Below, one piece after another: positions 1 through 61,948 of a stretch of DNA of 64,000 nucleotides. Source of the DNA: Basidiobolus meristosporus CBS 931.73 (taxonomy: Eukaryota > Fungi > Basidiobolomycota). The DNA lies in assembly GCA_002104905.1 (NCBI GenBank), contig MCFE01000197.1, forward strand, positions 1 to 64,000, read 5' to 3'. The translations under genes and the position numbers were made by a program. Position 1 is the first letter of the stretch. The number at the start of each line of letters is the position of its first letter. Below the pieces are notes generated by a model. That model was not told where the DNA came from. It saw only the letters and a list, made by a program, of their open reading frames with translations, and made no database searches.

Positions 1-3000
1 TTCTCCTCAGAATAATTTTCGAGCAACTTGTCTTCACAGTCAATTATACCGGACATAGACTTGTCAAATTTAGCCATGTATTTAGATGAAGTAACCACAA
101 CAATAGCATGAGTCTCGCTGATTATAAATGAGCTACGTGCTTCTGGATAGTTGGGATCCATGGGAACATATGCTCCACCAGCTTTGAGAACTGCTAGCAT
201 AGCTACTATCATATCAACTGACTTGTCGATACATAGGGGGACCATGGACTCGACACCTACTCCAATCTCGGCAAGATAGTGGGCTAGTCGATTTGCCCTA
301 CTGTTCAACTCATGGTACGTGACAAACTCGCTGTCCTCGAACTGAACCGCTATGTTGTTGGGTGTTCGCACAACCTGTTCCTCGAACAGCGTGTGAATAC
401 ATCCATGGTGAGTGACATCGGCACTAGGTCCACTCCATTGTTGTAGCAGCTCATGTTCGTGAGCAGCGATGACGCTGAAGCTTCCGATCAGCGTATTTGT
501 ATTGCTGGCAATACGTTGCAGCGCTGTCTTCAGATGCTCAAATATCCACTTTGCCTCATCCTGAGACACAACATCCTCGTCGTACAACATGGACAAGTGG
601 TGCTCTCTCTTCCCAGTAGACAACTCCACGACTAGCGGGTAGCTTGCTGGCATGGCTGCCTTGACTTCCATCAGCCCAATCGACTCAAAGGTATGTCGCT
701 GGTCTCCTCCCGTGAGGTTCTGAACAACTAGCAAAGTGTCGAATAATGAGTCCATCTGACCGTTGCCCCACAGTTTCTGGATTTCCTGAAGTCCAATGTT
801 CTGGTATTGGCACTGCTCCAACTGAGCAGTATGTATCTGACTCAATACATCAAGGAGAGTCGAATCATCCTCAAGGTTCACTCGCACGGGTAGCGTGTTG
901 ATGCAAGGCCCACATATCTGGTCGATTCCACCCACTGGCACATTTCGGCCCGAGTTGACCACCCCGAATACGACATCCGAGCTACCAGTGTGCGCTCTCA
1001 GCACCAAAGACCAAGCCAGGTTCATTACCGTAGCAATGGTGATATTGTGCCTTCTTGCTAGCTCCGTGATGTCCACCTGGACCCGTTCCTCGATGCAGCT
1101 ACGCGTCTGCGGCTTTGTGGAAAACGATGTGTGCTTGGAGATGTGAGTTGCCGCTGCGCCATCTAGGACCCTTGACCAGTATTCTAGGGACTTGCCTCTA
1201 TCTAGGCCAACATTGTACTCAATAAAGCTAGCATATGAAGGCCTCTGTGGTAGATCCAGTGCGCGATATGCCCTCACAAGATCTTCAACGATGAGACCCA
1301 TGGACCATCCATCGTACAATGCATGGTGGATGGTCCATATGAGGCATCCTCCAGGTTGCTCACCACGCAACCAGGTAAAGCGGGTCAGCAGCTTACCTTC
1401 GGCAATTCCTTCCTCTCGGTCCTTCTGGAGTGTTTCTTGGATCTCGTGCTCCATCAAAGTCGCACTACCAGTAGCAATCTCCCTCCAGTCGATCATATCA
1501 TCCGATAGGACCACTTGCAATCCATTCAGGTGTGAGTTGCCACGGCTCACAAACACGATGGTAGTGCGGAGAATAGGATTTGATTTGATCACCGTTGACC
1601 AGGCCTTCTTTAGGCGCATGATATCAACACTCTCATCAAAGGAAAATACGTGCTGTGTGAGATACTCGGAGTTCGCTCGGAGCCCCAAGGCAAACAAGCC
1701 TTCTTGCAGTGGGACACATGGGTATACATCCTCGACACTGCTGATGGGGATCCCGTTGTTTGGACATCCACATTGAGCAGATCCTCGACCTCACCTGGCT
1801 CCAATTTGAGCAGCGAGAATTTCTCGATCTCCTTTGCTCTCACCCCATTGCTTACTGGAGAAGGTACCAGTTTGGCCATTTCTGTAATTGTCGGATGTTC
1901 AAACACTTGCTGGACCGTGATTTGGTAGCCTTGCTGGCGGGCTGCTGCCACAAGCTTGATGGCCACAATTGAGTCACCACCTAGACTAAAGAATGAGCTG
2001 TTGGTTCGGATCTGACTCTCCGCGATAATCAAAACTCTTGACCACAGCTTTATCCAACACAGCTCCATTTCGGTAGCAGGCAAAGATGAAGTTTCACCTT
2101 CAGATTTACTTAACGCATGCAGTTCCTCCGCATTCATATTATTAAGCATCTTCTTCAGCTCGCCTCGGTCTAGTTTTGCCATTCACATTAGTAGGAACTC
2201 GGCGAATTGGAATAATCATGTTCGGCTCCATATAGGATGGCAATTTTGTAGTAAGTAAGGTTTGTATCTCAGCAATCCACGTCATAAATTGCTCGGTCTC
2301 AGCAGCATTGTATAGCATAGTGCCCACGCGCTCAGTTAGCTGCTCATAGAAGTTTACCAGTGCAACCAAAATCTTGCGATTTGTTTCCTTATCAACAATC
2401 AGTGGAAGAACACAGGCTCTTGAAACCATTGGGTGTTCGTGAAGAATATGCTCAATCTCATCCAGCTCAATCCGCAATCCATTCAGCTTTATCTGGTTGT
2501 CCATTCTCCCAATCAACTCCACCGTCCCATCCATGTTGAATCGAGCCAGGTCGCCGGTGCGATACATTCGTTCTGCAGGGCTGTCTGGATTCGACACAAA
2601 GGCTGCAGCGGTCAGGTCGGGTCTGTTTAAGTATCCACGAGCCAACTGTGGACCAGACACGCAGAGCTCACCCACTGCACCCAAAGGAACTGGCCGTAGT
2701 CGGGAATCAAGAATGTATATCCTATTACGCCCAAATGGTAAGCCGATATTGCCACAAGACGTGCTTTCTGTGACCCGACGATTTACCATGAAAGCTACAG
2801 CTGACTCGGTTGGTCCATATGCATTGCTCAGGTGAGCCAGTGAAGCCCATCGGTCTTTCAAATCTGGAGTCATCATTTCACCGCCAAGGCACAGCCTTTT
2901 AACATGACAGTTCTTGTCACATTGCAATAAACTGGCTACCGAGGGCGTTAACATCAGAGTATTCACATTCATTACGGCAATCATCTCGTCTAGCTTAGAG

Positions 3001-6000
3001 TAGAGCGCCTCCTTATTGGCTAAGCAGGTCCGTGATCCAAAAAGCAACGGAACAAACACTTCGATCACAAACGCATCAAAGGTGTAACTAGCGAATTGGA
3101 GCACGGAGTCAACCATCTCCAGGCGCCATACATCCTGCATCGCAACAACAAAATTGAGGGTAGCCGTATGCTCCAGCAAGACTCCTTTCGGTACACCAGT
3201 TGAACCCGACGTGTAGATGACATAACACAGGTTGGCTCCCGTCAAGTTTGCTATGACTGGATTGGTGTCGGAATACTCCTCCAATTCCAAATCCTCAATG
3301 ACAACCACTGCAGGTACACTCCCTTGGAACCTGGATGTATAGCACCTGCTTACTAGTACAGTCTGAGCTGAGGTCTCTTTAACTATGAATCGGCTTCGCT
3401 CTTCAGGATTAGCCGGGTCCATTGGTACGTAAGCTCCACCAGCTTTGAGAACTGCTAGTATGGCCACCACCATATCAATGGATCTGTCGATACATAGGGG
3501 GACCATGGACTCGACACCTACTCCAATCTCGGCAAGATAGTGGGCTAGTCGATTTGCCCTACTGTTCAACTCATGGTACGTGACAAACTCGCTGTCCTCG
3601 AACTGAACCGCTATGTTGTTGGGTGTTCGCACAACCTGTTCCTCGAACAGCGTGTGAATACATCCATGGTGAGTGACATCGGTACTAGGTCCACTCCATT
3701 GTTGTAGCAGCTCATGTTCGTGAGCAGCGATGACGCTGAAGCTTCCGACCAGCGTATTTGTGTTGCTGACAATACGTTGCAGCGCTGTCTTCAGATGCTC
3801 AAATATCCACTTTGCCTCATCCTGAGACACAACATCCTCGTCGTACAACATGGACAAGTGGTGCTCTCTCTTCCCAGTAGACAACTCCACGACTAGCGGG
3901 TAGCTTGCTGGCATGGCTGCCTTGACTTCCATCAGCCCAATCGACTCAAAGGTATGTCGCTGGTCTCCTCCCGTGAGGTTCTGAACAACTAGCAAAGTGT
4001 CGAATAATGAGTCCATCTGACCGTTGCCCCACAGTTTCTGGATTTCATGAAGTCCAATGTTCTGGTATTGGCACTGCTCCAACTGAGCAGTGATGTATCT
4101 GACTCAATACATCAAGGAGAGTCGAATCATCCTCGAAGGTTCACTCGCACGGGTAGCGTGTTGATGCAAGGCCCACATATCTGGTCGACTCCACCCACTG
4201 GCACATTTCGGCCCGAGTTGACCACCCCGAATACGACATCCGAGCTACCAGTATGCGCTCTCAGCACCAAAGACCAAGCCAGGTTCATTACTGTAGCAAT
4301 GGTGATATTGTGTCTTCTTGCTAGCTCCGTGATGTCCACCTGGACCCGTTCCTCGATGCAGCTACGCGCCTGCGGCTTTGTGGAAAACGATGTGTGCTTG
4401 GAGATGTGAGTTGCCGCTGCGCCATCAAGGACCCTTGACCAGTATTCTAGGGACTTGCCTCTATCTAGGCCAACATTGTACTCAATAAAGCTAGCATATG
4501 AAGGCCTCTGTGGTAGATCCAGTGCGCGATATGCCCGCACAAGATCTTCAACGATGAGACCCATGGACCATCCATCGTACAATGCATGGTGGAATGGTCC
4601 ATATGAGGCATCCTCCAGGTTGCTCACCACGCAACCAGGTAAAGCGGGTCAGCAGCTTACCTTCGGCAATTCCTTCCTCTCGGTCCTTCTGGAGTGTTTC
4701 TTGGATCTCGTGCTCCATCAAAGTCGCACTACCAGTAGCAATCTCCCTCCAGTCGATCATATCATCCGATAGGACCACTTGCAATCCATTCAGGTGTGAG
4801 TTGCCACGGCTCACAAACACGATGGTAGTGCGGAGAATAGGATTTGATTTGATCACCGTTGACCAGGCCTTCTTTAGGCGCATGATATCAACACTCTCAT
4901 CAAAGGAAAATACGTGCTGCGTGAGATACTCGGAGTTCGCTCGGAGCCCCAAGGCAAACAAGCCTTCTTGCAGTGGGACACATGGGTATACATCCTCGAC
5001 ACTGCTGATGGGGATCCCGTTGTTTTGGACATCCACATTGAGCAGATCCTCGACCTCACCTGGCTCCAATTTGAGCAGCGAGAATTTCTCGATCTCCTTT
5101 GCTCTCACGCCATTGCTTACTGGAAAAGGTACCAGTTTGGCCATTTCTGTAATTGTCGGATGTTCAAACACTTGCTGGACCGTGATTTGGTAGCCTTGTC
5201 GACGAGCTGCTGCCACAAGCTTGATGGCCACAATAGAGTCACCACCTAAGCTAAAGAATGTATCGCTAATATCGATACCATCCTCGTCTATATTTAATGC
5301 TTGGGACCAGAGTGTAACCCAAATACTCTCATTCTCATTTTTGGATTGGGGATCTGCTGCGCATTTGAAGCTGTTAAATTTATGAATCTCCTCCTTAGCT
5401 GTTGACTGGTATAGGTCCATCAACGATCCTCTAGCAATTTTTCCACTTGAGTTCTTTGGCATCACTCCCAGCGGGAACCATATACATGGCACCATGTATG
5501 ACGGTAGCTTGAAGCGCACTAGCGCCTCTACTTGGACAAGTATATTTCTTACTGGTTCAACATATTCTTGATACAGTAGAGCACTCTCTGCCTTCTTATG
5601 TAGCAGGCTAGTAAATTCTAAAAAGGCCACCAGTGTTTTACGATCGGTTGCCTTGTCTACAGCCAGCGGGAGAACGCAGGCTCTTGAAACCATTGGGTGT
5701 TCGTGAAGAACATGCTCAATCTCATCCAGCTCAATCCGCAATCCATTCAGCTTTATCTGGTTGTCCATTCTCCCAATCAACTCCACCGTCCCATCCATGT
5801 TGAATCGAGCCAGGTCGCCGGTGCGATACATTCGTTCTGCAGGGCTGTTTGGATTCGACACAAAGGCTGCAGCGGTCAGGTCGGGTCTGTTTAAGTATCC
5901 ACGAGCCAACTGTGGACCAGACACGCAGAGCTCACCCACTGCACCCAAAGGAACTGGCCGTAGTCGGGAATCAAGAATGTATATCCTATTACGCCCAAAT

Positions 6001-9000
6001 GGTAAGCCGATATTGCCACAAGACGTGCTTTCTGTGACCCGACGATTTACCATGAAAGCTACAGCTGACTCGGTTGGTCCATATGCATTGCTCAGGTGAG
6101 CCAGTGAAGCCCATCGGTCTTTCAAATCTGGAGTCATCATTTCACCGCCAAGGCACAGCCTTTTAACATGACAGTTCTTGTCACATTGCAATAAACTGGC
6201 TACCGAGGGCGTTAACATCAGAGTGTTCACATTCATTATGGCAATCATCTCGTCTAGCTTAGAGTAGAGCGCCTCCTTATTGGCTAAGCAGGTCCGTGAT
6301 CCAAAAAGCAACGGAACAAACACTTCGATCACAAACGCGTCAAAGGTGTAACTAGCGAATTGGAGCACGGAGTCAACCATCTCCAGGCGCCATACATCCT
6401 GCATCGCAACAACAAAATTGAGGGTAGCCGTATGCTCCAGCAAGACTCCTTTCGGTACACCAGTTGAACCCGACGTGTAGATGACATAACACAGGTTGGC
6501 TCCCGTCAAGTTTGCTATGACTGGATTGGTGTCGGAATACTCCTCCAATTCCAAATCCTCAATGGCAACCACTGCAGGTACACTCCCTTGGAACCTGGAT
6601 GTATAGCACCTGCTTACTAGTACAGTCTGAGCTGAGGCTTCTTTAACTATGAATCGGCTTCGCTCTTCAGGATTAGCCGGGTCCATTGGTACGTAGGCTC
6701 CTCCAGCTTGAGAACTGCTAGTATGGCCACCACCATATCAATGGATCTGTCGATACATAGGGGGACCATGGACTCAACACCTACTCCAATCTCGGCAAGA
6801 TAGTGGGCTAGTCGATTTGCCCTACTGTTCAACTCATGGTACGTGACAAACTCGCTGTCCTCGAACTGAACCGCTATGTTGTTGGGTGTTCGCACAACCT
6901 GTTCCTCGAACAGCGTGTGAATACATCCATGGTGAGTGACATCGGCACTAGGTCCACTCCATTGTTGTAGCAGCTCATGTTCGTGAGCAGCGATGACGCT
7001 GAAGCTTCCGATCAGCGTATTTGTGTTGCTGACAATACGTTGCAGCGCTGTCTTCAGATGCTCAAATATCCACTTTGCCTCATCCTGAGACACAACATCC
7101 TCGTCGTACAACATGGACAAGTGGTGCTCTCTCTTCCCAGTAGACAACTCCACGACTAGCGGGTAGCTTGCTGGCATGGCTGCCTTGACTTCCATCAGCC
7201 CAATCGACTCAAAGGTATGGTGCTGGTCTCCTCCCGTGAGGTTCTGAACAACTAGCAAAGTGTCGAATAATGAGTCCATCTGACCGTTGCCCCACAGTTT
7301 CTGGATTTCATGAAGTCCAATGTTCTGGTATTGACACTGCTCCAACTGAGCAGTGTGTATCTGACTCAATACGTCAAGGAGAGTCGAATCATCCTCGAGG
7401 CTCACTCGCACGGGTAGCGTGTTGATGCAAGGCCCACATATCTGGTCGACTCCACCCACTGGCACATTTCGGCCCGAGTTGACCACCCCGAATACGATAT
7501 CCGAGCTACCAGTATGCGCTCTCAGCACCAAAGACCAAGCCAGGTTCATTACCGTAGCAATGGTGATATTGTGCCTTCTTGCTAGCTCCGTGATGTCCAC
7601 CTGGACCCGTTCCTCGATGCAGCTACGCGCCTGCGGCTTTGTGGAAAACGATGTGTGCTTGGAGATGTGAGTTGCCGCTGCGCCATCAAGGACCCTTGAC
7701 CAGTATTCTAGGGACTTGCCTCTATCTAGGCCAACATTGTACTCAATAAAGCTAGCATATGAAGGCCTCTGTGGTAGATCCAGTGCGCGATATGCCCTCA
7801 CAAGATCTTCAACGATGAGACCCATGGACCATCCATCGTACAATGCATGGTGGAATGGTCCATATGAGGCATCCTCCAGGTTGCTCACCACGCAACCAGG
7901 TAAAGCGGGTCAGCAGCTTACCTTCGGCAATTCCTTCCTCTCGGTCCTTCTGGAGTGTTTCTTGGATCTCGTGCTCCATCAAAGTCGCACTACCAGTAGC
8001 AATCTCCCTCCAGTCGATCATATCATCCGATAAGACCACTTGCAATCCATTCAGGTGTGAGTTGCCACGGCTCACAAACACGATGGTAGTGCGGAGAATA
8101 GGATTTGATTTGATCACCGTTGACCAGGCCTTCTTTAGGCGCATGATATCAACACTCTCATCAAAGGAAAATACTTGCTGCGTGAGATACTCAGAGTTCG
8201 CTCGGAGCCCGATTGCAAATAAGCCCTCCTGAAGTGGGGCGCATGGATACACATCCACCACATTGGCGATAGGAATCCCATTGTCTTGAACCTCGGAATT
8301 TAGTAAGCATTTCACCTCATCTGGCTTCAACTTGAGCAGCGAAAATTTCTCGATCTCCTTTGCTCTCACCCCATTGCTTACTGGAGAAGGTACCAGTTTG
8401 GCCATTTCTGTAATTGTAGGATGTTCAAACACTTGCTGCACTGTGAGAATGTACCCTTTCTGGCGAGCAACTTCTACGAGCTTGATAGCCACAATGGAGT
8501 CACCACCTAGACTAAAGAATGAGCTGTCGGCTCGGATCTGGTTCTCTGCTATCCCCAATACTCTAGACCATAACTTCAGCCAATGCAGTTCGGTATTGGT
8601 AGCTGGTAAAAATGGAGTATCATTTCCGGATTTACCTTGCGTAAATAGCTCCCCTCTGTCCATGTTGTAGAGCTTTTTTTTCAGCTCACCTCTATCTACT
8701 TTACCATTCGTATTAATGGGAACCTGTCGGATCGGTATAATAACGTTTGGCTGCATGTAAGGTGGTAATTTTGCTGCAAGAGTGGTACGTAACTCTTCAA
8801 TCCATTTTGCAAATTGCCTGGCCTCATTAGCGTCATATAATATAGTAGTTGAGTCTTCATTTAACTGCTCATTGAAGTTAGCCAGTGCAACCAAAATCTT
8901 GCGATCGGTTGCCTTGTCTACAGCCAGCGGGAGAACGCAGGCTCTTGAAACCATTGGGTGTTCGTGAAGAATCATGCTCAATCTCATCCAGCTCAATCCG

Positions 9001-12000
9001 CAATCCATTCAGCTTTATCTGGTTGTCCATTCTCCCAATCAACTCCACCGTCCCATCCATGTTGAATCGAGCCAGGTCGCCGGTGCGATACATTCGTTCT
9101 GCAGGGCTGTTTGGATTCGACACAAAGGCTGCAGCGGTCAGGTCGGGTCTGTTTAAGTATCCACGAGCCAACTGTGGACCAGACACGCAGAGCTCACCCA
9201 CTGCACCCAAAGGAACTGGCTGTAGTCGGGAATCAAGAATGTATATCCTATTACTTCCTAGTGGCTACCGATATTACTACACGAAGTATTTACATCAACA
9301 ACTGAGTTGACTATGAACGCGACTGCCGCTTCGGTAGGGCCATAGGCATTACTGAGAATAACCTTTGAAGCCCAAATATCACGGACTGTGGACGTTAGCA
9401 TTTCTCCTCCTACTATTAGCTTCTTGATACTTGGTACTCTCGCTGGCTTAACAGTACCGGCGATTGTCGTAATCATTACCGCAGCGGTGATGTTCATAGT
9501 GTTGATGGTATTCTCCAGATTGTTCATCAGGCTTTCTTTTTTAGCGATAACTACTCGAGCCCCAGCAAGGAATGTGGTAAATATCTCCAGTATCGAAACA
9601 TCAAAGGTGTAATTAGCAAATTGCAACACTCTATCTTGCGTATCAAGCCTCCAGTCTTCCTGATATGCATGGACGAAATTGACCACTGAACGATGCTCTA
9701 GTACCACTCCCTTTGGAACACCCGTGGATCCCGAAGTATAAAGTACATAGCATGGGTCGCTTGGCGACAGGTTCTCCATCATAGGATTCTCATTTGGGTG
9801 TTGGCCTATAGCATATGCATCAGTGTCCATTAATACTCTTGCACATCCTTCAAATCTGGTTCTCAGGACACTTGTAGTAATAACTACTTGAGCCTTGACT
9901 TCTTCAATGATGAACATATTTCGTTCCTTTGGGTTTTCAGGATCCAACGGTATATAGGCACCCCCAGATTTTAATACAGCTAGTATCGCAACTATCATAT
10001 CCACGGACTTTCCAATGCATATCGGTATTAACGGCTTGGGCGTGACACCTATATTAATTAGATAGTTAGCTAGACGATTGGCTCGCTTGTTTAGCTCCCC
10101 ATAGCTAACAAGCTCGTTTTCTTCCGTTTGTAGGGCGATCCTATCTGAACTGGACATAGCTTGCCATTCAACATAGCTATGTAGATATGCTTCGGGCTCA
10201 AACGGGCTACTATTGCTTCGAGAGAACGACTCCAGCATGTCCTTCTCAAGGTTGGGCATTTTCGGAATGCTCTCAAGCGTGGAAATCGGGCTAATGTTCA
10301 GCATTGCATCAAGTATCACATCCAGTCTCTGGAGAAAGAGCTCCGCTAGTGTTTGGTGTAACGTTTGGACATTGTAGTCCAAGCGATAAACAAACTTCTC
10401 ATTTCGCACGCAGATATTGAGTCCAAGGGGATACTCTGTTGGTTCAATTATCCTCAATCGCTTGAGCGAGAGTTCGCCCTTAGTGGAAGTTGCCTCGTTG
10501 GTCATCTCACTTGGCTGAAAGTTCAATATTGAGTCAAACGCAAGAGCACCGCCCTCTGCATTACTCCATTTTTTTATGGAGTGTAGGCCAGCATGCTGAT
10601 ATGGTATACTTGCAACCATATGGTCATGTATTTTTCTTAGCCAATCGTAGACTATGGCCTGTGGTTTATAAGAGACTCTCAGTGGCAGGGTGTTGATACA
10701 TGGACCAACAACTTTATCAACATTCTTCATGGGAATGTTTCTTCCGTTCACGAGAATCCCAAATATGCACTCATCAGCACCATAGTAAGGCTGAAGTATC
10801 AATCCCCAGGCAGCCTGAAACAGTGTAAATGTAGTAACCCCCGCTTTCTTCGCGAGATGCTGTAGGTCACCCGCCCGGAGTTCACTGTTGACTGACAACT
10901 GCACATATTCTTCCGCCAGATGGCCCGCATCGCCTAACTTTGGGAATACGCAAGGTTCGGTATTCATCAAGTAATTACACCAGAAATCTCTTTCTAACTG
11001 GCTCTTTTGTTGTCTCTGCTCTTCGATATGGTACTCGATATAATCCCTAAACGGTATGGTTGCTGGCTTGAGCGTATTGTTGTATGCTGAAAGTAGACAT
11101 TCCATGGTGATTCTATCTGACCAGCCATCATTAATCGCATGATGGCGGCTTATCACCAAAAGGGCACCTCCGTTGTTCTGGTGTATTAAGCAAAAGCGAA
11201 TGTTTGATTTCCCTAGTGGAAATCCTTTGGCTATGTCATCAGTAAGGTATTCGCTCAAGACATGGTCCACATCTTCGGCTTGTACTGGTAGATAGCCCAT
11301 ATCAGGCTCCATCTTTTTCAGGACAACCTGAAGGTAAGCACCGGAATCCTGATGTATATATGGATTATTGATGAATATCGTTCTCAATATTGGTAGGTCT
11401 TGGATGACTGCTCTCCAGGCGGATTTCAGTTTTTCGAAATCCCATGAACCAACAAGCTCATACACATCCTGGACATGATATAGACTTGGTGATCGCATAT
11501 TGCCCATGATGAGTCCTTCTTGAATTGGCGAGCATGGGTAGATATCCTCCGTATTTCGCACTCCATACTTGGGCAAAATCTCATCAATCAATTGATCCAA
11601 ATCATTAGCAGGCATGGAGAGAAGTGGAAGGTCCGAGACAGTAAACCGAGATACATCCTGATTCGCACAAGTAGTGATGGCTTCAAGTAACATTTCGCGC
11701 CAAGCCTTCATCCATCTCTCAATTATTGACTTTTCGTGTAGAGCTTGACTATACGAGATGGAAGCGCGTAGGGTATTGTGAAGCATGGTCACCTCAGCCT
11801 CAATGGCGTTCATTCGTCTCCATTGGGGTCCAATCATTTGCAGATCAAACTTGTACTGGTCGTCAACATCCTGTAATAATGCATTGGCTTTTTCCAAATG
11901 TTGAAAACGCCCTAGATAGTTGAAACCGACTTGCAAGGAATCCCTCTCAAATTCTCTAGAAGTCACCTCGTTCAAATACCGAAGAAGTCCGTAGTTGATA

Positions 12001-15000
12001 CCATGGTTAGGGATGCGTTGGCGTAGATCTTTGGTACGCTTGAGTACATCGATTATAGATTCATTGGATCCGGCAACGATATTCATTGGGTATATGGATG
12101 TAAACCAGCCGACTGTTCGTGAAATATCAATCAGGTCCGTCCATGGCTCACGGCCATGTCCCTCTGTAGCGATGCCCAGGGATTGAGTTTGGAATGTCAC
12201 ACAGTACGATGCAGCAAGTGATGCGAGCATAAAATCCACAGCCTTTGTTTTGTAAGCGGCATTACTAGTACCGAATAATAGTGTCGTATACTCTTCATCC
12301 AAAGAGAAGGATAACGTGTCTACGGTCGCCTGGGTGTTGAGTTGTGTTTTTGAGCCATCAATATTTAGCGGCTCTATGTACTCTTGACTAGGCCAGTCCG
12401 ACTGGCTCAATGTAGAAGCGTGAGCTCTAAGCATTCTGCTCCATGTTCTGAAGGATAGTGATTTGTAGGGCAATGGCTGTCCTTCCAACAGATTCTCAAG
12501 ATCTTCCCAAATTATTCGCCAGGAAACCAGGTCTATGATGTAGTGATGAATAGTCATGAATAGCAATTGCTGACCGTCTGAAAGATCATATAGAGCAAAG
12601 GCGAAGATTGGGCCAACTTCGATATCAAGGCTTTTTTGTAACAGACTGATTTTTTCTTGCAGCTCTTCCGGATCGAGCACATGATAACGCTTTACATCTA
12701 TGCCAATATCCTTTGTAGGTAGAATCCGTTGCTTCCAGCGACTGTCCACTTGTGAGAAACGAACACGCAACATGTCGTGGTGATCAATGAGCTTGTAGAG
12801 CGCTGTTTGCAAGTTGCCTGAAGAGATGGGGGTTTTCACTTTGACCAGCCACGACAAATGAAAGTGATTCACATTTGGCTGTTCCACTGCGAAAAACTGC
12901 TCCTGAATAGGTGTTAAAGGAATCTCATCCTCATCGAAGTCCCCTCCATCGACAACCTCGTACCCCTCCGATTCTATGGTAATCAACTCTGCAAAGTTAT
13001 TGAGCTGATGTATGGTCGGGTGTTGCAATATACTCTGCACCGATACTTTTACTCCCAATTGGCGACACATCGAGGATACCTGTATCGCAGAAATAGAATC
13101 GCCACCCAAATGGTAGAATGAATCATCTGTGCCTATGCGTGATGGATCAATATTCAGCACTGAGGCCCAGGCTGAGAGCAAGATTTGTTCAATGCGAGTG
13201 TTTGGTTTCGACTTCGCATTACTCTTGTTCAGCTCTGTACCAAGGCTACGAAGCTGGTCCAGATTACTCTCGTTGAAGATCCTCTCCAATGTTCGTAAAT
13301 CAGTCTTGCCGCTAGTGTTGACCGGAACTCGGGTAAGAGGCACCCATACAGTTGGCACCATGTATTTTGGCAGCTTCTGTCTTACTATACTCTGCAGAGC
13401 CTCTATTTTCGGGATAAGCTCAGCATTCTGATGACTGTCGATCACCTGAACTGAGGCAACATCATTGAGCGTACTTTTGAATGCCACAAAGGTCACAAGT
13501 GCACGTTGCCCTGCCTTTGATGTTGATTTGGTGCTAAGCAACCTGACTGATGCTCGAGCGACTTCGGAATACTGATGCAAAGCGTATTCGACTTCATCCA
13601 ATTCGATGCGCAAACCGTTCAATTTTACCTGGTTATCTTTACGACCAAGGATGGTGATAGATCCGTCGGTATTAAATCTTCCCAGGTCACCCGACCTGTA
13701 GAGGCGCTCACCTTTGGCAAATGGAGACTCGACAAACGCCAGCTGGGTCAGATCGGATCTGTTTAAGTAGCCCCGTGCAAGTTGAGGACCACCAAAACAA
13801 AGCTCACCAATGGCCCCCAGGGGAACCAATTTCAGTCTGTCGTCAAGGATGAAGACTTGGTTTCGACCAATGGGCCAACCAATGTTGTTGTAAGCGGTGG
13901 ATGCACTTAGAGATCTTCTGACGACGGTATACACAGTAGTCTCAGTTGGGCCATATCCATTGTTAAGGTCCACTTCACCAGCCCAAGCATCGCGTACAGG
14001 CTTCGTCATCATCTCCCCACCTTGCTGCAATAGTCGGAGTGTAGGCACCTCCTTAGGCTTGAGCAAGCCAGCTACTGTGGTGGTCAGTTGAGCCGCTGTC
14101 ACCTTCATCAAGCGCGCCATCTCTGATAGATGCGTGAGTAAGTTGTTTTTCGTAGCCAAACATATGCACGATCCCACAGTAAGATTCACAAAGAAATCGA
14201 GAATGGAGGCATCAAAGGTGTAATTTGAAAACTGCAGAAAGCGATCGCTCTCTTGGAGGTTTAGGATGCTTTGATGAGCAACAATATAGTTCACGGCTGC
14301 GCGGTGTTCAATCATTACCCCTTTGGGCATTCCTGTCGATCCGGACGTGAAGATCAAGTAGCAGAGATTGGAAGATCTCATTTCAGGAACAATGGGATTG
14401 ATTACCGGGTTTTGATCGAGCTCAGTCACCATTGCATCCAACAATATCACTTGGAGGTTGGGACATTCACTTAAAATCCCGCCCAGATCACTCGTAGTCA
14501 AACTTATTCTGGCTTTGGTTTCACTGACAATGAAGGATACCCGCTCTTCGGGATGCTCTGGATCTAGAGGAACGTAAGCAGCGCCGGCCTTGAGCACCCC
14601 TAATATGGCTACTACCATCAAGATGGACTTCTCCAAGCAAATAGGTATGATAGTCTCGGGCCCTGCTCCCAGGCGGATAAGGTAATGTGCAAGTTGGTTT
14701 GAGCGACGGTTCAACTCAGCGTAGGTAATCCATTCCTTATCCTCAAATTGAAGAGCTATGTTTTCGGGTGTTTTCTCTACCTGCTTCTCTACAAGTTGGT
14801 GAATACAGCTATCGTCTAGTTCTTTGACGAAATCAGCTTTTCCACGCTGCCATGTTTCTAAAAAGAGGGACCTTTCAGCAGGAGATGCCCACTCCAAAGA
14901 TCCCACTGGTGTATCGAGATTCTCAACCAAACTTCTAACGATGTGTGTAAGCTGGCTAGCGATAAGCTGGCCTTGATCCAATGTGAAATGGGTCTTTGCA

Positions 15001-15601
15001 AAGGTCAATTGGATGGTTAGGTCTTCATCTTCCAACCAACCAATTCCATGGATTACAAGCTATATCCCAAGGCAATGAATCATAAATCTCCCACTCAACC
15101 CTGCATGAAGAATAGTTGACATACCTTGGAAGTATCTACTATTTCAGTATTCAGGCCTCCATTTGCAAAAATGATGGCAGTATTGAACAACTCGTCATCA
15201 TAACCAGCTGATGAGGGTACTAGTTGATCTGGATCTGTAATTGATGTACATGGTAGGCTAGAAAGCTTACGAATCCATTCAGCTGCTGAAAAGCTCCTTT
15301 CATCTGCATCGAACATTGACCAAAATACTTCAGGAGACAATTGCTTCTTTCCCTCTGCACTGTAGGTACCAAATGCAATATTTCGATTTCCTGTGTATGT
15401 GCTGAGTAGAATTGTCCAGGCTGCGTGGAGTAGCATTCTTTCAACCTCTGAAGTCTTCTTTAGAGTATTGTGCGCATATAGCCGGCTAACTGAGGCAATC
15501 TTCGACTCGACGATGTTAAAAGAGGTGTACCTCTCTTTGGTATCACCTGCTTCATACCCGGATAACTGCGGGAAAAGACAAGCGTTGACTGATGAACTCA
15601 T
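1..15601 (-). CDS. Multimodular non-ribosomal peptide synthetase (C*-A1-T-E-C-A2-T-C-A3-T-C-A4-T-C-A5..., continues beyond the left edge); frame broken by nine 1-nt indels
   Basis: ATG at 15601 opens a degenerate N-terminal C-like domain; a 65-nt GT-AG intron (15124-15060) joins it in frame (DTSK|LVIHG) to the 1925-aa ORF. A-domain motifs YLIFTSGSTGMPKGV, YGPTE, GELxxxGPQLARGY, YRTGDL; T domains LGGDSI; E domain HHYIIDLVSW, EGHGRE, RTVGWFTS, FNYLGRF; C domains HHAxxDGWS. The ORF pieces are colinear and join across single-base indels. Confidence 0.92.
170..9255. repeat. Near-identical tandem repeats of the NRPS C-A module, period ~3262 bp
   Basis: The same sequences recur at 453/3714/6977, 1192/4455/7716 and 2448/5712/8974 (offsets 3261-3264). 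Shared blocks are about 170-1990, 2390-5250, 5650-8200 and 8895-9255, separated by divergent A-subdomain/T segments. Confidence 0.95.
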
Positions 15602-32457: not shown

Positions 32458-34107
32458 CTAACCCGTCACTTTGAGTTTGATGTCCTCCTCTGCGGTGTTT
32501 TGCCGACGATTTTCCGACCTAAACAGGACTAGCCCCAGCAAACACACTAAACTCACCAACGTGGCCGAAAATATCAGCGAATACTTCATGTGATACGGTG
32601 GGTTGCTCTCTGGCCCTGCCCGAAGCGCGTCCATAATAAACATGGTTACAAAGCCAAAGAATTGAGCGCACATCCACAAGATCCCGCTGCTGGTGCCCTC
32701 GTCCACCGGGAATGTCGTTTCAACGCCCAGCTCCAAGCATACCGGGAGCCCTGCGAATGCCAGCATCCCAATGGCTCCGAAATTGACGCAGATCCAGGCG
32801 AAATTATTCTGTCGGACTTTCGCGGGGTTAGAAATGGCCACTGAGATGGCCAGAAATGGAACTTACTTGTAAAGATCAAGGCAATCAAGCTTATCGGCAG
32901 TAAACAAACTAAGAGTCGGAAAACTCGCATAAATTTTTTGGTTTTATCCAGGTAAACGCCACAGATCCCTAAATGCCATGGTTTAGAAAATCCTCCCCTT
33001 TACTGGCCACAGTTGATAGATCCTACCTCCACCAACCAATCCAATGCCGATCAGAGTCACTCCAAATATACTGCCATCGTCATCCGAGTACCCATACGGG
33101 TTGATGAATTCTGATAATAAAGTTACCACATCGTTGAAAATTCCAACCACCGATCCAAATATCAACACCAAAAGCCAGAAATGTGGGAGTCTTGAGCATA
33201 TCTTGAGCCCTGGTATAAACGGCTCCGATACTTTCGAAGCGCTGAGCGATGGCGGAGTCCTGGGTAGCTTGGGTATGATTGAGGCCGGTATGGCCACGAT
33301 TGTAGCGAACAAGGCTGCCGCAAGAAGCTATGTTGGGCGTTATTACTAAAATCGAGGTAGATGCTATTCAAGCCCTCACGTACCGCGTTCGGAAATTCAT
33401 TCGGGGCACTGCACACAGAGGTTGCCAGAACCATGCCAACCGCTGAGCCCAGAGGGTTGGCTGTTTTGTAGAGGTTAGCGATAGACCATACTCATCAACG
33501 TTGCAAGGACACCGTACTCACCTAAAGAAGCTACAGTGTTGGCTAATGCCCGCTCACTATCCGAAAACCATACCGCAGCCATTTTGGTGGGAGCATTGAG
33601 AAGAAAGGTTTGAGCAGCGCCTGCAATTACCTGGTGAATGATCTGCATTAGAGGCGAACTTCTCCTTACGACGGCATACCCGGTACAAACCTGACCCAAG
33701 ATGGCCAGAGCAAGTCTCCCACTACTTTGCTCATCCCCAACAAACGTTCCAAAATATCTTATCCAAGCTCCCGCAATTTGCAAGGCCGCGCCTATCAGCA
33801 AAGCAGGCTTAAGACCTTTCGTGTCGAGCACCCAACTACTCAGGAGAGAAAACAACACGAACATAAGCATATACAGACTACTTAGAAGGTTGATGATGGT
33901 CATGGAGATGTTGTAATAGCTTTGGGCTTGCGATGAAACCGAGGAAAAAGTGACCCATATTACTGAGGCAGCAATATTCAATAAGAAAACGACAAACAGA
34001 ACCAGAAACCGGATTTTGTATACGAGGAAGTTTGTGGTTGAAGGTTCCAGGAAGAAGGAATGCTCTTCGGTAGGAGAAAGTTTAGGATTGTCTACTTCGT
34101 CAGTCAT
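32458..34107 (-). CDS. MFS transporter, FLVCR/SLC49-like
   Basis: FLVYKIRFLVLFVVFLLNIAASVIWVTFSS, AQTFLLNAPTKMAAVWFSDSERALANTVAS, LPVCLELGVETTFPVDEGTSSG; multiple hydrophobic helices; introns. Confidence 0.88.
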
Positions 34108-34962
34108 GTTGAACAGGGATGAGCCAGCACCTTCCACAGAAAATAGAAATTATTCCAGGTTGGAACATAAATGGACGATAGTGGTGTCTAGCCTTATTGG
34201 AAAAATTCGCCATCGTTGAATATTTTTAAAGGAATTCTCCTCGTTTTGCAGGTGTGCTGATTTCGGATGTCCGGTATCTGCGCTGACCCTTCGGAGGAGA
34301 TTTACTCCGCTCCGTCACTCCCTCTGCCAACACTCCTTTCAGACAAGGGCGTGCACCCAAAGTGTAGATGCTTTAATTCAAACAAATCACGTGCATAGAG
34401 GCATCTTCCGATTGAGGTAGCTGGACATGGTGCATGGGCTGACATCAAGGCCGACATCAAGATTGCCATGACAGCTTCAAAAGCAACTTTTGTTTGCCAC
34501 TCCATACGCTGTATTTCCAGGCGCTAATTTCCAGCCGCATTATATGGCCAATTTCAAAAGCCCAATCAGTACCTTGTGGCCATCCCCAAAAAGATACCAA
34601 TAATACTATGGCCAATGAGGTGTCCTTACTGGGACACTAATATATTTCTTCAAGTATCGTTTAAACTTTTCCTATTAATTAAGCGAATTTGGTGGGGAAC
34701 GCAATGGAAATTCCCTACTTCACCAGCCTCCCTTTTGCATTCAGCTCTCCCTGGCCACTCTCCTCCCTGTCCTCCCCTCAACTCCCCATTGCCCCCGTCC
34801 ATCTTTGGTCTTAATCACTTATAATTTTCTTTTTCCCTTTGGTTTCTTTGCCTCCATAGAACTTGTGTCCTCCTCTTCCTTGCTACCCTCTATTTCCTTT
34901 CTCTCTGTGTTTCAAAGGCCTCCCTTCCAACCTCCACCACACCTTAGTTGTAAACGAAAAAG

Positions 34963-44856: not shown

Positions 44857-46436
44857 TTACTCAAATCTCAAATTCAGTAGCTCCCATAGCTGTCTCATCG
44901 AGAGTGGTCCATCCCCGTGGTAAGTGGTTCGCGCCGCTATCGGCAAGGACTCGATGTAGTCCCGTATCGCCCGCACCCCATCCCCACTAAACACGCAGAA
45001 CATCGGCAGCTGGGTGATGGAAAAGTCCTTCGGCGGGGCGCGGGAGAACTTCTGTAGGTCGGCCCGTAGAAAGGCGGGGATCCCGGTCAGGGTGATATGG
45101 GTTAGCTGCGGCGTGATGTTCAGCAATCTCAGGATGCCCGGTACGGTGATTTGAACGCAGTACGACAGATGCAGTCGCTCCAACGATTGACACGCCACTA
45201 TCCCACACATGAATCCATAGATCCCCCGGTCAGTGATGCTGGCACACTTTACCAGACCGACTCTCCGAAGCTTCGGCAACGTTCCCAACTCGTACATGGA
45301 GGCGTCCGTTAACTGGTTGCAGCAAGCAAGATCCAAGTAACGTATCCTGGTGCAGTGGCGCGTAAGGGTGGCCACCCCCTTGTCAGTGATCCGCGCACAA
45401 TGTCCCAGGACCAGGTTGTGGAGTTGCTTTCCAAGCTTGGCGATGTGGGAGATGGCCGCGTCGGTCAGGTTGACACATTTCGCTAGTACGAGGTGGCGTA
45501 ACCGTGGGCATCGCTGGATTAGATTGCCGATGGTGGCGTCGGTAATCTGGGAGCATGAGGTCAGATCCAAGATCCGAAGTTGGTTGAAGTCGGGGTGGAT
45601 CCTTGCGAAAGAAAGATCGGTAATCCGCACGCAGGCAGCCAACCTCAGCTCACGAAGCGTTATGCAATGCTCCAGTATCTGGCTGACGGAGGCATCCGTC
45701 ACCTCTCCACACTGAGCCAGATCCAGCTCAGTCAGACCCCTAAAAGAGGAAATCATTTGCACGGAAGCGTCGCCCAGTCGCAAGCAACCAGCACATTTCA
45801 GCTAACAACATAGAGATCCATTAATGCTCCATTGAATAATATTGGGGTTAGGCGTGGAACTGCGAACTGGTGAGAACGTACCCTTTTAATACCCAGGTGC
45901 TCCCTAAAGCTAAGCAACGCCTCGTCCTCGACATTCTGGGACCCACTGATGTTCAGAGATTGCAGTTGTCGACAACACGCCGACAGCGCCAAAAGACACT
46001 GATTGTCGAGCACCAGCTCGCTCAGATCGATGCTCAGCAAATTGGGCCACTGCTGTACGAGTTGGGTGACCAGGGGACTGGGGATACTTTTGCACCCCCC
46101 GAAAGACACTTTCTCCACCCGGTTGCATAAAGACAGCTTGGCAATGGCCTCCTCACCTGCAAGCTCCCCGCCAAGAAGGGACAGGTTGATCCGACGCACG
46201 TAGTTGGAATACGGGGGTCGGAGCACCTCCGACATCTGGAGGAAGCCGGTTAGAGAGGAGAAGGATAGTCTGTGCCAAACGTGTTCCACACACAAATCGT
46301 GCCATCTCCTACACACCAGAAGACAGGAAAGGTGAGTGTTACGCGAACGGAACAGTTGGAAAATATGGACCAATATCTCGTTCGGCAGGTCCTGAATAAC
46401 AAGTGCCGGACACGGTGGCGAAACTAGGGTCATCAT
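44857..46436 (-). CDS. GRR1: F-box/leucine-rich repeat SCF substrate adaptor, Grr1-like
   Basis: F-box LPNEILVHIF..CLLVCRRW; cysteine-containing LRRs (LDLTSCSQITD, LVLGHCARITD); C-terminal FCVFSG; one intron ~45783-45890. Confidence 0.85.
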
Positions 46437-47187
46437 ACACAGTTCAAGGCTGTTCAACGCTTCTATGTGGAATGACAGTCGATGGGGAGAGTGGGGAAGC
46501 AGGTATCAGGGAAGTAGCGGGCAGACAACCTGGATTCTAGGAAAACCAGCGCTTGGTTTCTTAAACGGGCCACGCTTATAAATAAGGGCAGGGCTCAAAA
46601 GGTGACACAAAGGCAGAGAGACAGATTAGAAACTAAGTTACAGTAGTACATTTAGTTCATTAAGATCACTGGCGATAATTAAGCACGATATATATTTGGA
46701 AGCGAATTACAAATGAGAGATCAAACGGTACCGTTTGCAATTCTTAAAATGGAGATTTCGCTCCAGGAACAATCTATGCAATCCCAGCAGTAAATGGATT
46801 CTGGCCAGCGTTGATTGTTCTACTCAATGGCTGCATCATTCTTTTGACCTGGCATTATGATGCTATATGGTGGTGAGCCAGAGGTATGAGGGATTCTTTG
46901 GAACACAATAGGCCATTGGGATTTTGGGAGATGAAACAAGTTTTGGCGTATGTATTATGTCGTTGGTCAGGCTGACGATGAGGACCAGGGTTAGGGGAGG
47001 AGATGGGGATGGAAGGTTTACAGTCACGGTCACGGTCACGAGCTTGTTCCGTAACACCTTATCCCGTAATAATTTGGCCCGGATTCCTCAGCATGTTCGG
47101 ATTAGGAAAACCCACGAAAAAAAAGAAAAAAACCACCGGATGGTTGCATTCATCTCTCGCACGGTGACTTGTTGTTCCTAGGAAACC

Positions 47188-55982: not shown

Positions 55983-57875
55983 GCAATTACAGGCTCTCAG
56001 TGATTGCTTGAGTCTATTTAGAGACTTTTCAAGCTTGCAGACCAAATGAGGGTTATTCTGGTAAACAAACCCATCAGGCTGGTCAGTATACATGTCCTCA
56101 TTGAGATCTTCACTCAAAAACTCAGCTTTTACATCCATTTAATGTATAAGAAGCTTATATTTGGCTGCAATAGCCAATATTTATCTGATGGAATTAAACT
56201 TGGCTGCCAGTGCAAAGGTCTCAGTATAGTCAAGTCCTTCTGTTTGAGAGTATCCTTTGGCCATAAGTCTTGCTTTGTATCTTTCAGTTGTACCATCAGT
56301 CTTGTATTTGTTGTAAGAGTCTTGGAGATATTGGAAGTGATTGGGAGAACAAGTAGATTATGTGGTTTTCACTTAATGATTTATTGAATGTAAAAGTAGT
56401 ATTTATACTTTTGCCTGGTCCTGGCATTACAACACGTAGAATAGGCTAAGGAAGGTCCCAGAACATGTGTGCAAAGTTTGGGGCTGTTTGGACAACTTTG
56501 AGAATTTTCATGTTCTGGATACCTGGTTTTTTGGTGAAAATATACTAAGTAAATCCCAACAAGGAATTTGGTCAGTATTCTCTAGGATTTAAGGGTAATG
56601 ATCTAAGTGACTAAGGTAGGTGAATATTTAGGTGGAATTACAAATTTTTACAACACTCCCAGTCAGCTAAATGTTCATACTGACTAGTCCTAATTTTGAC
56701 CTAAGATATTCAAACTTGTCTCTAGCTAATGGTTTGGTAAATATGTCTGCAATCATTTCATCTGTAGGACAGTAAACTCAGCTAACTAAGTTATTCTCTA
56801 TAGCTTCATGTATGAAATGATGTCTAATATCTATGTGCTTGGTTCTAGCATGAAAAGTTGGATTTCTACCTAATTGTATATATCCTTGATTATCTTGAAA
56901 TAAAGTAATAGGCGTTTTTTGACATAGGCCTAAATCTGTAAAGAGCTTTCTTAGCCACATTGCTTCTTTTGTAGCTTCACAGGCTGCCATATACTCTGCC
57001 TGTGTGGTGGAAAGTGCTACAGTTGGTTGCTTTCTTGAATTCCATGAAATTGCTCCTTTACAGTAAAGAAAGGTGTATCCTGTGGTGGATCTTCTGTCTT
57101 CTAAATTGTGTCCCCAATCAGCATCAGAGTATCCCACAAGATCCTGTTCTGAATCCTTATAAGTGTATCTTAAGTAGATATCAGCAGTTCCTTTTAGGTA
57201 TCTAAAATTCTGCTTAACTGCTGCAATATGATCAGATCAATAGTTCTTATTATGTTGGCTGACAACTCCCACTGAATATGAGATATCTGGACGTGTTCCA
57301 AGCATGATATACATCAGACTGCCGGCCATAGATTGATAAGGAAAGTCAGGGCTTTCAGATGGCACCAAGCTCTCTTGATTTGTTTGAGTTTTGACCAAGT
57401 TAAGGTTTGTCTCCATTGGGGTAGCTGCTGGCTTACAGTCTTCCATTTTGTACTTCTTTAGTATATCTTGAATATACTTGGATTGACTTAGGGTGATAGT
57501 CTGGGTACTTCTGTCTATGGAGAACTTAATCCCTAAGTAGTAACTAAGTTCTCCTAGATTGGGCATCTTGAACTCCTTAGATAGGCTGGATTTAGTCTCT
57601 TCCAATGTTTCTAGGTTATTAGTGGCTATAATAAGATCATCCACATATAGAGCTAATAGAACTGGATCTGCTCTATCTGGCTTATAGTATATACTATAGT
57701 CAGCATTACTTCTTTTGAAACTCAAAGATTCCAAATAAGAATCTATCTTGCAATTCCAGGCTCTTGGTGATTGTTTGAGACCATATAGTGTTTTTTTGAG
57801 CTTGCAGACCAAATGGGGGTTATCTTGGTCAACAAACCCATCAGGCTGGTCCATATACATGTCCTCATCAAGTTC

Positions 57876-59178
57876 TGTGGTAATGGAAAGTATTCCATTA
57901 CTACAATATCTCTAAACCAATATTGCACTCATTTCTTTATTTTGCTTTTTGCTATTGTAACACACAAGTGAAAGATCAAGAATTTCCAACTTTGATGAGC
58001 AAATGCTCCAGACCCTGACAAGCAATCCCCCCAAGAATATTATGACATACAGAACACAAAGTAGCCAACACATGTTTCAAATTACAGCTCATTTGAAGCA
58101 GTACTTAAGGAGTTATGACCAAAAGAGTCCAATTATTATATATACTATGCCTTATTGCTAGGATTACTAGGGTTACTTTGATCGCGTGTAACTTTTGAAC
58201 CAGCCAATCAAGTCACGTGATATTCTCACAGGTGCTGCGCCTATGTCCGATCTGCGCCACTGCAAAATTTTAGCTTCATATCACATGTATTGCTTGCGCA
58301 ATTGCCCAAAAACTTTGATCCTTCAAAATTTTCATATATATTACTTCCCCAGCTGAAAAATAAAAGAGAGCCTCTCTTTCCAGAATCTCCACACTACAAT
58401 TACAAGTTTAAGGGTTATAAGACTTCCCCTGCATCACTTGCACTGTTGAGTATTCTGACTTTGATCAGTACTACATCAGTAAAGAGACTGCAAAGCTCAC
58501 AAGAATCCAATCTAAGTTCTACAAGAAACTACCACTTTTCTGTTGGAAAAGTCCCCTCTAAGAAACCCCTTTACTCTAAAGACACCCCTTTAGACACCCC
58601 TTTAGTCTAAAGACCCCTTTAGAGACCCTTTAAGAAACCCCTTTACTCTAAAGAAGCCCCTTTAGGCACCCCTCTGGTGTAAAGTCCACTTTAGAGACCA
58701 CTACAAGAAGCCCCTTTACTCTAAAGACACCCCTTTAGACACCCCTTTACTCTAAAGACACCCCTTTAGACACCCCTTTACTCTAAAGACACCCCTTTGG
58801 ACACCTCTTTAGGTCTAAAGACCCCTCTAGAGACTTCTACAACACACCCCTTTAGGCTAAAGGGAAGCTCAGAATTTCCATATTAGAAAATATTTTCTCA
58901 GAAAGGAAAGTGACTTCCAAATAAGGAAAAGTTACTATAAAAGTAAATAAGCCCATTAGTCAACAGAAGGTCAGAACACTGCTGTAGAAGTGATAAACTC
59001 TGCCTACAGTATATTTTGAGCCTAAGATTGAGGAAATTAGTGAAAGTTATATCTTCTACCGGTATATCAAACTCCCAATAAACTATTTCAGTATTAGAAT
59101 ACTGGAAGTTGTTGTATAGTGTTGATTAGCCTCTACATTGTAGAACAAGCCCCAAACTAATCATAATACAACACAACA
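57876..59178. mobile_element. 1303-bp TG...CA insertion with 4-bp TSD GTTC inside the copia RT; probable solo LTR of an unrelated family
   Basis: Begins tgtgg and ends acaaca; gttc at 57872-57875 and 59179-59182; removal restores the RT stretch AFLSGELDEDMYMDQP. Confidence 0.8.
58540..58860. repeat. Minisatellite with ~31-bp unit ctctaaagacacccctttagacaccccttta
   Basis: Three near-perfect units at ~58720-58810, flanked by degenerate copies. Confidence 0.85.
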
Positions 59179-61934: not shown

Positions 61935-61948
61935 TGGGGCTCATAACC
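61935..61948 (-). promoter_or_regulatory. Copia primer-binding site GGTTATGAGCCCCA directly abutting the 5' LTR (homologue GGTTATGGGCCCCA at 63792-63805)
   Basis: Immediately follows the LTR-terminal ACA on the minus strand in both elements; matches the GGTTATGGGCCC PBS type of the copia lineage. Confidence 0.8.

Follow-up and report, generated by a model that had tools for sequence, protein, structure and literature searches.

A mosaic of near-identical and divergent segments across modules 2 to 5 of a bacterial-type peptide synthetase gene in the fungus Basidiobolus meristosporus

The stretch of DNA analyzed here, which we call the window, comprises positions 1 to 64,000 of contig MCFE01000197.1 from Basidiobolus meristosporus CBS 931.73 (assembly GCA_002104905.1). 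On its minus strand lies a nonribosomal peptide synthetase (NRPS) gene that opens with an ATG at 15601, contains one 65-nt intron, and runs off the window start inside its fifth adenylation domain, A5, of which the first third lies within the window. Stop-to-stop minus-strand frames combined with Pfam matches gave the domain order remnant C, A1-T1-E1-C2-A2-T2-C3-A3-T3-C4-A4-T4-C5-A5, where C, A, T, and E stand for condensation, adenylation, carrier (thiolation), and epimerization domains. Within modules 2 to 5, segments that are nearly identical between modules alternate, at sharp boundaries, with segments that are highly divergent.

The host of this gene is the fungus, because the gene has a spliceosomal intron, its neighbors in the window are eukaryotic (genes for a PPR protein, a glycosyltransferase family 49 protein, an MFS transporter, and an F-box/LRR protein, together with a copia-type retroelement), and its best matches are found in Basidiobolus ranarum. 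For the A1 region these are three B. ranarum proteins with 63-70% identity, followed, in a length-filtered protein search whose filter left long proteins outside, by bacterial NRPSs with 36-41% identity. In tblastn comparisons, the B. ranarum proteins are collinear with the gene from 15601 to about 8400; the closest of them are ~54% identical overall, and their architecture departs from that of our gene after T2. We are thus dealing with a real resident Basidiobolus gene that encodes a bacterial-type NRPS of at least five modules. Many bacterial-like NRPS genes, with horizontal transfer, have been catalogued in this genus (Tabima et al. 2020, PMC7466969), and the present gene resembles them in its multimodular structure, its best matches within the genus, the bacterial matches at ~40% identity that come next for the A1 region in the length-filtered search, and its location among eukaryotic genes. 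Gene conversion, pseudogenes, and frameshifts did not come up in a term search of that paper.

Core motifs A1 to A10 of adenylation domains were located in all four complete A domains, and motifs were also found in the N-terminal part of the fifth, with matches to the Pfam families AMP-binding and AMP-binding_C. The carrier domains are represented by four LGGDS sites, and the condensation motif HHxxxDG reads HHAINDG in C2 and HHALYDG in C3 to C5, with HHYIID in E1. Ahead of A1 lie ~250 residues (15125-15601 plus 14790-15059, minus strand) with no Pfam match and a weak likeness (E about 1e-4) to the C-terminal half of condensation domains. For the part encoded by exon 1, the Pfam search likewise gave no match, and blastp alignments to C2 and C5 were weak. 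This leader is also present in the B. ranarum homologues and, judged by its sequence, looks like a remnant C lobe retained before the starter A domain.

Next to the window start, the gene consists of direct repeats with a period of 3261-3265 bp, amounting to 2.7 units of about 3262 bp. These units were defined on plus-strand coordinates (U1, 1-3261; U2, 3262-6524; U3, 6525-9787) and aligned, and identity was followed in 100-column windows. Identity among all three units is 98-100% across alignment columns of about 225-1650. Over columns 1650-2000, U1 and U2 still share 93-100%, and U3 drops to 69-96%. Columns of about 225-2000 correspond to the second part of the T domain, the T-C linker, the C domain, and the N terminus of the following A domain. 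In gene order, the array can be written as A2core-X-V2-Y-Z-X-V3-Y-Z-X-V4-Y-A5core, where X, Y, and Z are the shared blocks and V2, V3, and V4 are islands comprising most of the A subdomain (Asub), the A-T linker, and the T domain's first part (Table 1).

Table 1. Parts of the NRPS gene in gene order, followed by the frame breaks; positions are plus-strand coordinates of the window.
Feature	Position	Strand	Comparison or basis
Exon 1: start codon and N-terminal region, weak C-terminal-half condensation-domain remnant	15125..15601	-	tblastn of B. ranarum proteins, ATG and translation
Phase-0 spliceosomal intron, 65 nt, GTATGT...TATAG	15060..15124	-	Sequence; B. ranarum homologues bridge both exons
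Unique uninterrupted part: A1-T1-E1-C2, A2 N terminus and core up to the NIG site	9267..15059	-	1931-codon open frame, Pfam, motifs
Block X, copy 1 (A2: after NIG, motifs A6-A8 plus about 25 codons)	8902..9254	-	95.6-98.3% nt identity with X copies 2 (5641-5992) and 3 (2413-2728)
Island V2: rest of Asub (motifs A9, A10), A-T linker, T part 1 up to FFSLGGDS	8522..8901	-	70% nt to V4 (dS 1.14, dN 0.26), 41% to V3
Block Y, copy 1: T2 part 2, T-C linker, C3, A3 N terminus	6749..8521	-	96% nt to other Y copies, 69% patch at 8212-8322
Block Z, copy 1: A3 core, motif A2 to NIG	5993..6748	-	98.8% to A4 core, 55% to A2, 57% to A5
Block X, copy 2 (A3)	5641..5992	-	Alignment and boundary scan
Island V3, most divergent: Asub, linker, T part 1 of module 3	5261..5640	-	25-30% aa to V1, V2, V4
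Block Y, copy 2: T3 part 2, linker, C4, A4 N terminus	3486..5260	-	99.0% nt to copy 3
Block Z, copy 2: A4 core	2729..3485	-	Codon-based comparison
Block X, copy 3 (A4)	2413..2728	-	Boundary scan and codon-based comparison
Island V4: Asub, linker, T part 1 of module 4	1996..2412	-	Boundary scan and codon-based comparison
Block Y, copy 3: T4 part 2, linker, C5, A5 N terminus	225..1995	-	Alignment and codon-based comparison
A5 from just before motif A2, divergent (about 57% identity), cut by window start	1..224	-	Alignment
Break 1: A2-specific sequence, 4 codons upstream of where identity switches at NIG	9265..9266	-	
Break 2: just past motif A8; extra base on an inter-copy SNP, both alleles present	8973	-	
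Break 3: just ahead of HHxxxDG of C3; same length difference at 4592	7853	-	
Break 4: within motif A2 of A3	6707	-	
Break 5: just ahead of HHxxxDG of C4	4592	-	
Breaks 6 and 7: in C4, 43 nt apart, each on an inter-copy SNP with both alleles	4092..4135	-	
Break 8: within motif A10 of A4, in island V4	2171..2174	-	
Break 9: T4-C5 linker; base missing at a site that varies between the other two copies	1758..1759	-	

The blocks and islands differ sharply in their divergence at synonymous sites (dS). Block Y is 96.3% identical between the copies carrying C3 and C4 (dS 0.10) and 99.0% identical between those carrying C4 and C5 (dS 0.025). Block Z is shared by A3 and A4 (98.8%, dS 0.034) and is 55-58% identical to the corresponding parts of A2 and A5, while block X is 95.6-98.3% identical among all three copies (dS 0.02-0.10). 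By comparison, islands V2 and V4 share 70% of their nucleotides (dS 1.14; nonsynonymous divergence, dN, 0.26), and V3 shares 41-45% with either, at saturated dS; dS is also saturated for the A2 and A5 cores. Only three residues distinguish the core of A3 from that of A4, and all of them lie outside the motif-adjacent pocket positions, the pocket having been located roughly from motif offsets. The residual differences between copies, with a dN/dS of about 0.2, indicate purifying selection.

The boundaries are a few bases wide, and adjacent segments differ 10- to 50-fold in synonymous divergence across them. The switch between V and Y lies immediately 5' of the codons for FFSLGGDS in every copy (1996, 5261, and 8522 on the plus strand, alignment column 2000), and the switch between X and V lies ~20-30 codons past motif A8 (column 2380 for U2 and U3, column 2416 for U1). 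The A2 core gives way to block X at NIG, a site located between motifs A5 and A6 (9254/9256), and A5 departs from the shared sequence at around 225, ~15 codons ahead of its motif A2.

A first-pass annotation made from the sequence alone had described much of this pattern. Its recurrence at a ~3262-bp period with sharp identity switches is confirmed by sliding identity, as are the near identity of the A3 and A4 cores and the restriction of the likeness of A2 to the part from NIG to motif A8, the A2 core itself differing (55%). The three Asub/T-start islands do differ from one another as had been described, but the one in U1 starts at 1996 rather than 2040. Similarly, A5 indeed shares only its N terminus, but the divergence begins before GGAYVPMDP, and the motif itself is conserved. 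One proposal did not hold: the module 3 island is no closer to module 1 (28% amino acid identity) than to its neighbors (25-30%); its highest identity, 35-36%, is to the module-2 type of B. ranarum. Recombination limited to the A core, which the annotation cited as a known bacterial route, is not what the sequence shows, as A2 also differs in its N terminus (52%) and in the upstream C domain (42%).

A common topology for all subdomain trees had been named as an outcome that would speak against recombination, and the segments disagree: the islands group modules 2 and 4, block Z and the second part of the T domain group modules 3 and 4, block X groups modules 2 and 3, and the C domains group modules 4 and 5. 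Simple divergence after one duplication is ruled out by the jumps in dS, from 0.02-0.10 to 1.14 or saturation. Because the tract ends differ between pairs of copies, and because block Y of U3 contains a patch of 69% identity at 8212-8322, several events of different ages are indicated.

As assembled, the reading frame through the modules is interrupted by nine one-base breaks, which the first-pass annotation had not noted, at about 9265, 8973, 7853, 6707, 4592, 4135, 4092, 2172, and 1758. Every one of them is a one-base length difference relative to a paralogous copy that reads through, and in every case the homologous protein resumes in the new frame. All nine fall into the repeated 9.3 kb and none into the 6.3 kb of unique coding sequence (P=0.009). 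Within the tracts that are nearly identical in all three copies, four of five breaks coincide with single-nucleotide differences (SNPs) between copies (P=6e-4 for random placement), and at 4135, 4092, and 8973 the copy with the extra base contains both SNP alleles side by side. The remaining breaks are length differences in short one-base runs. Introns as a source of the frame changes are ruled out, as these are one-base differences between otherwise identical copies in which the homologous protein continues. Mutation of the repeat-induced point mutation type is ruled out as well, since the ratio of transitions to transversions is an ordinary 59:29 and no stops were created.

We know of no mutational process that would leave both alleles, or a missing base, at positions where copies differ. 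The sites with both alleles and the site with neither bear the mark of a mixed-read consensus built from indel-prone long reads. PacBio sequencing was used for the CBS 931.73 reference (Tabima et al. 2020, PMC7466969). It is thus likely that the breaks are mostly consensus errors of a PacBio-only assembly, in which reads from near-identical copies or haplotypes were piled together. For codon and motif counts, the gene was read through locally with an X at every break, which yielded 5024 codons with zero in-frame stops and every catalytic motif present. If the breaks are consensus errors, the gene is probably intact.

Considering these data, we regard module duplication followed by repeated gene conversion as the best reading, one that we hold with moderate confidence together with the view that the breaks are errors in a probably intact gene. 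In this scenario, modules 2 to 5 are undergoing homogenization through intragenic recombination. At least one module duplication would have given rise to the near-identical modules 3 and 4, and conversion tracts of differing age would have overwritten Y, Z (in modules 3 and 4 only), and X in neighboring modules. These tracts would begin and end in or next to conserved motifs, namely, in FFxxGGxS of the T domain, after motif A8, between motifs A5 and A6, and before motif A2, and the island of Asub, A-T linker, and first T part of each module would never have been overwritten. Their sparing may have one of two causes: the divergence of the islands may block the formation of heteroduplexes, or each module may need its own Asub-T interface.

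The most economical history would be one in which the modules are old, as suggested by the V islands and by the A2 and A5 cores, and the intervals between the islands have been repeatedly converted, modules 3 and 4 having become alike across all 2.85 kb through one or more of these events. Both conversion as the mechanism and this order of events are what we infer from the gene sequence. The proposal of recent unequal crossing-over or gene conversion was therefore of the right class, as seen from the dS jumps and the incongruence, but two histories are compatible with the data, and a recent amplification is just one of them; later homogenization of old modules fits at least as well. In B. ranarum, the NRPS K7432_012009 contains two near-identical C-A-T-E repeat units about 1290 residues apart, and module homogenization may be common among Basidiobolus NRPS genes.

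Several points weigh against this interpretation. One of the length differences is common to two copies (7853 and 4592), as would be expected had conversion spread a genuine mutation. The breaks at 2171-2174 and 9265-9266 are located in sequence specific to one copy, for which the mixing of reads between copies is a weaker explanation; for the regions adjoining them (queries 1613-2182 and 9267-9866), the protein collection gave no match above 46% identity. Nine errors in 9 kb are a high number for a polished PacBio assembly, and both the copy number and the frame breaks rest on a single assembly. If reads were mixed, polishing may also have inflated part of the 99-100% identity. Finally, comparison with the closest B. 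ranarum proteins, at only ~54% identity, does not place the conversion after speciation.

The foremost alternative accepts the same repeat history and takes the breaks as real, the gene being a recently dead pseudogene in which conversion copied inactivating indels from one module to another. The shared length difference ahead of HHxxxDG and the sheer number of breaks are what this explanation would predict, and the protein collection yielded no transcript-derived or other independent fragment of the gene. We nevertheless consider it unlikely, as a dead gene accounts poorly for the lack of in-frame stops, the preservation of every catalytic motif, and the absence of breaks from 6.3 kb of unique coding sequence, and as it leaves three sites with both alleles and one with neither without a mutational explanation. 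A broader version, in which all or some of the breaks are real and conversion is spreading an inactivating indel (C3, C4), so that the assembly line is dying by its own concerted evolution, seems to us quite unlikely. Were real breaks the case, the islands of Asub and first T part would be the sole parts shielded from conversion.

Another scenario, which we find improbable, is a single recent tandem amplification of a C-A-T unit followed by three foreign imports of Asub and the T start, each replacing the same interval. The similarly low dS of Y, Z, and X (0.02-0.10) would be consistent with it, V3 is no nearer to any module of its own gene than to those of B. ranarum, and the genome offers many NRPS genes as possible donors (PMC7466969). 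However, it requires the interval to have been replaced independently three times between identical end points, no donor was seen, and V2 and V4 are each other's closest relatives at a dS of 1.14; tract ends that vary by pair are also better explained by many small conversions. Least of all do we expect the array to be in part an assembly artifact, with a wrong number or order of units or a likeness raised by mixed-read polishing: the sites with both alleles do imply that reads of more than one copy or haplotype entered the consensus of a PacBio-only assembly, but the five unique anchors (A2 core, V2, V3, V4, and A5 core) each require separate X and Y copies at their sides, and therefore at least three units exist, artifactual duplicates would be identical and free of islands with 40-70% divergence, and mixing of reads requires true copies that are already very alike.

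Duplication and conversion of modules, as preferred here, would make this locus a tidy new example, in a fungal host, of a known process rather than a new kind of system. In natural recombination of bacterial NRPSs, many breakpoints lie within the A core, and the Asub domain and the Asub-T interface are spared (Baunach et al. 2021, PMC8097286). Just like in those genes, identity in sliding-window comparisons of the Basidiobolus gene changes abruptly within A domains, either at core motifs or between them, Asub and its interface with T remain native, and C and A domains lack a common history. In contrast to the bacterial cases, the exchange took place within one eukaryotic gene and extends far beyond the A core, to the second part of T, the whole C domain, the A N terminus, and, in modules 3 and 4, the whole core. 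No core-only swap is demonstrated for any A domain in the window, and for A5 only the 5' boundary lies inside it.

A breakpoint within FFxxGGxS of the T domain, with the second part of T sharing the history of the downstream C domain, has also been described (Bozhueyuek et al., preprint 10.1101/2022.12.02.518901). As in these XUT units, the boundary in Basidiobolus lies at the 5' edge of FFSLGGDS in each of the three copies, and the second part of T travels with the downstream C domain. The homogenized unit differs from XUT in that it stops about 25 codons past motif A8 and not at the next FFxxGGxS; Asub and the first part of T are therefore excluded. A third precedent is the intragenomic replacement of an A domain between mcyB1 and mcyC of microcystin synthetase (Fewer et al. 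2007, PMC2174460). There too, recombination between modules generated two near-identical A domains, from which the same residue is expected at two positions. The microcystin case is cyanobacterial and comes with a known product and a link to chemotype, whereas the Basidiobolus case is known from the gene sequence.

With respect to the product, the near-identical cores predict a common amino acid substrate for modules 3 and 4, which would place the same residue at product positions 3 and 4. The C domains of modules 3 to 5 are interchangeable in sequence. If the gene is intact, it would provide a clean natural experiment in which C domains are common to three modules and A cores to two, at 96-100% identity, each module retaining its own Asub and first T part. 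In that case, its junctions would fall at fusion sites considered workable in engineering studies (FFxxGGxS and within the A core), extending the bacterial rules to a eukaryotic host. The first-pass annotation had called these junctions functional; this is unproven, since the gene as assembled contains nine frame breaks, one of them 4 codons from the NIG junction. The locus also calls for caution, as near-identical repeats in a PacBio assembly here bear frame breaks marked by a mixed-read consensus. Claims about fine differences between copies, about function, or about pseudogenes depend on accurate reads.

Two features of the individual domains may be added. Motif A10 of module 3 (5447-5464, minus strand) reads SGKIAR instead of the usual NGKVDR, with the lysine retained. 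C3, C4, and C5 open with YPC(A/V)PLQEGLF (8246-8260, 4985-4999, and 1721-1735, minus strand), in which they resemble dual E/C types or domains that take a D-configured donor; they are not preceded by an E domain and are only ~30% identical to C2, which does follow an E domain.

Elsewhere in the window, an MFS transporter fragment (33475-34137, minus strand) is located ~18 kb from the start of the NRPS gene. An F-box open reading frame and an LRR open reading frame lie 15 nt apart on the same strand (44857-46457, minus strand) and probably belong to a single F-box/LRR gene that is interrupted by a short intron, a stop, or a further frame break. Finally, a copia-type long terminal repeat retroelement with gag, integrase, and RVT_2 reverse transcriptase occupies 57237-61992 (minus strand), within an AT-richer stretch of about 38-39% GC.

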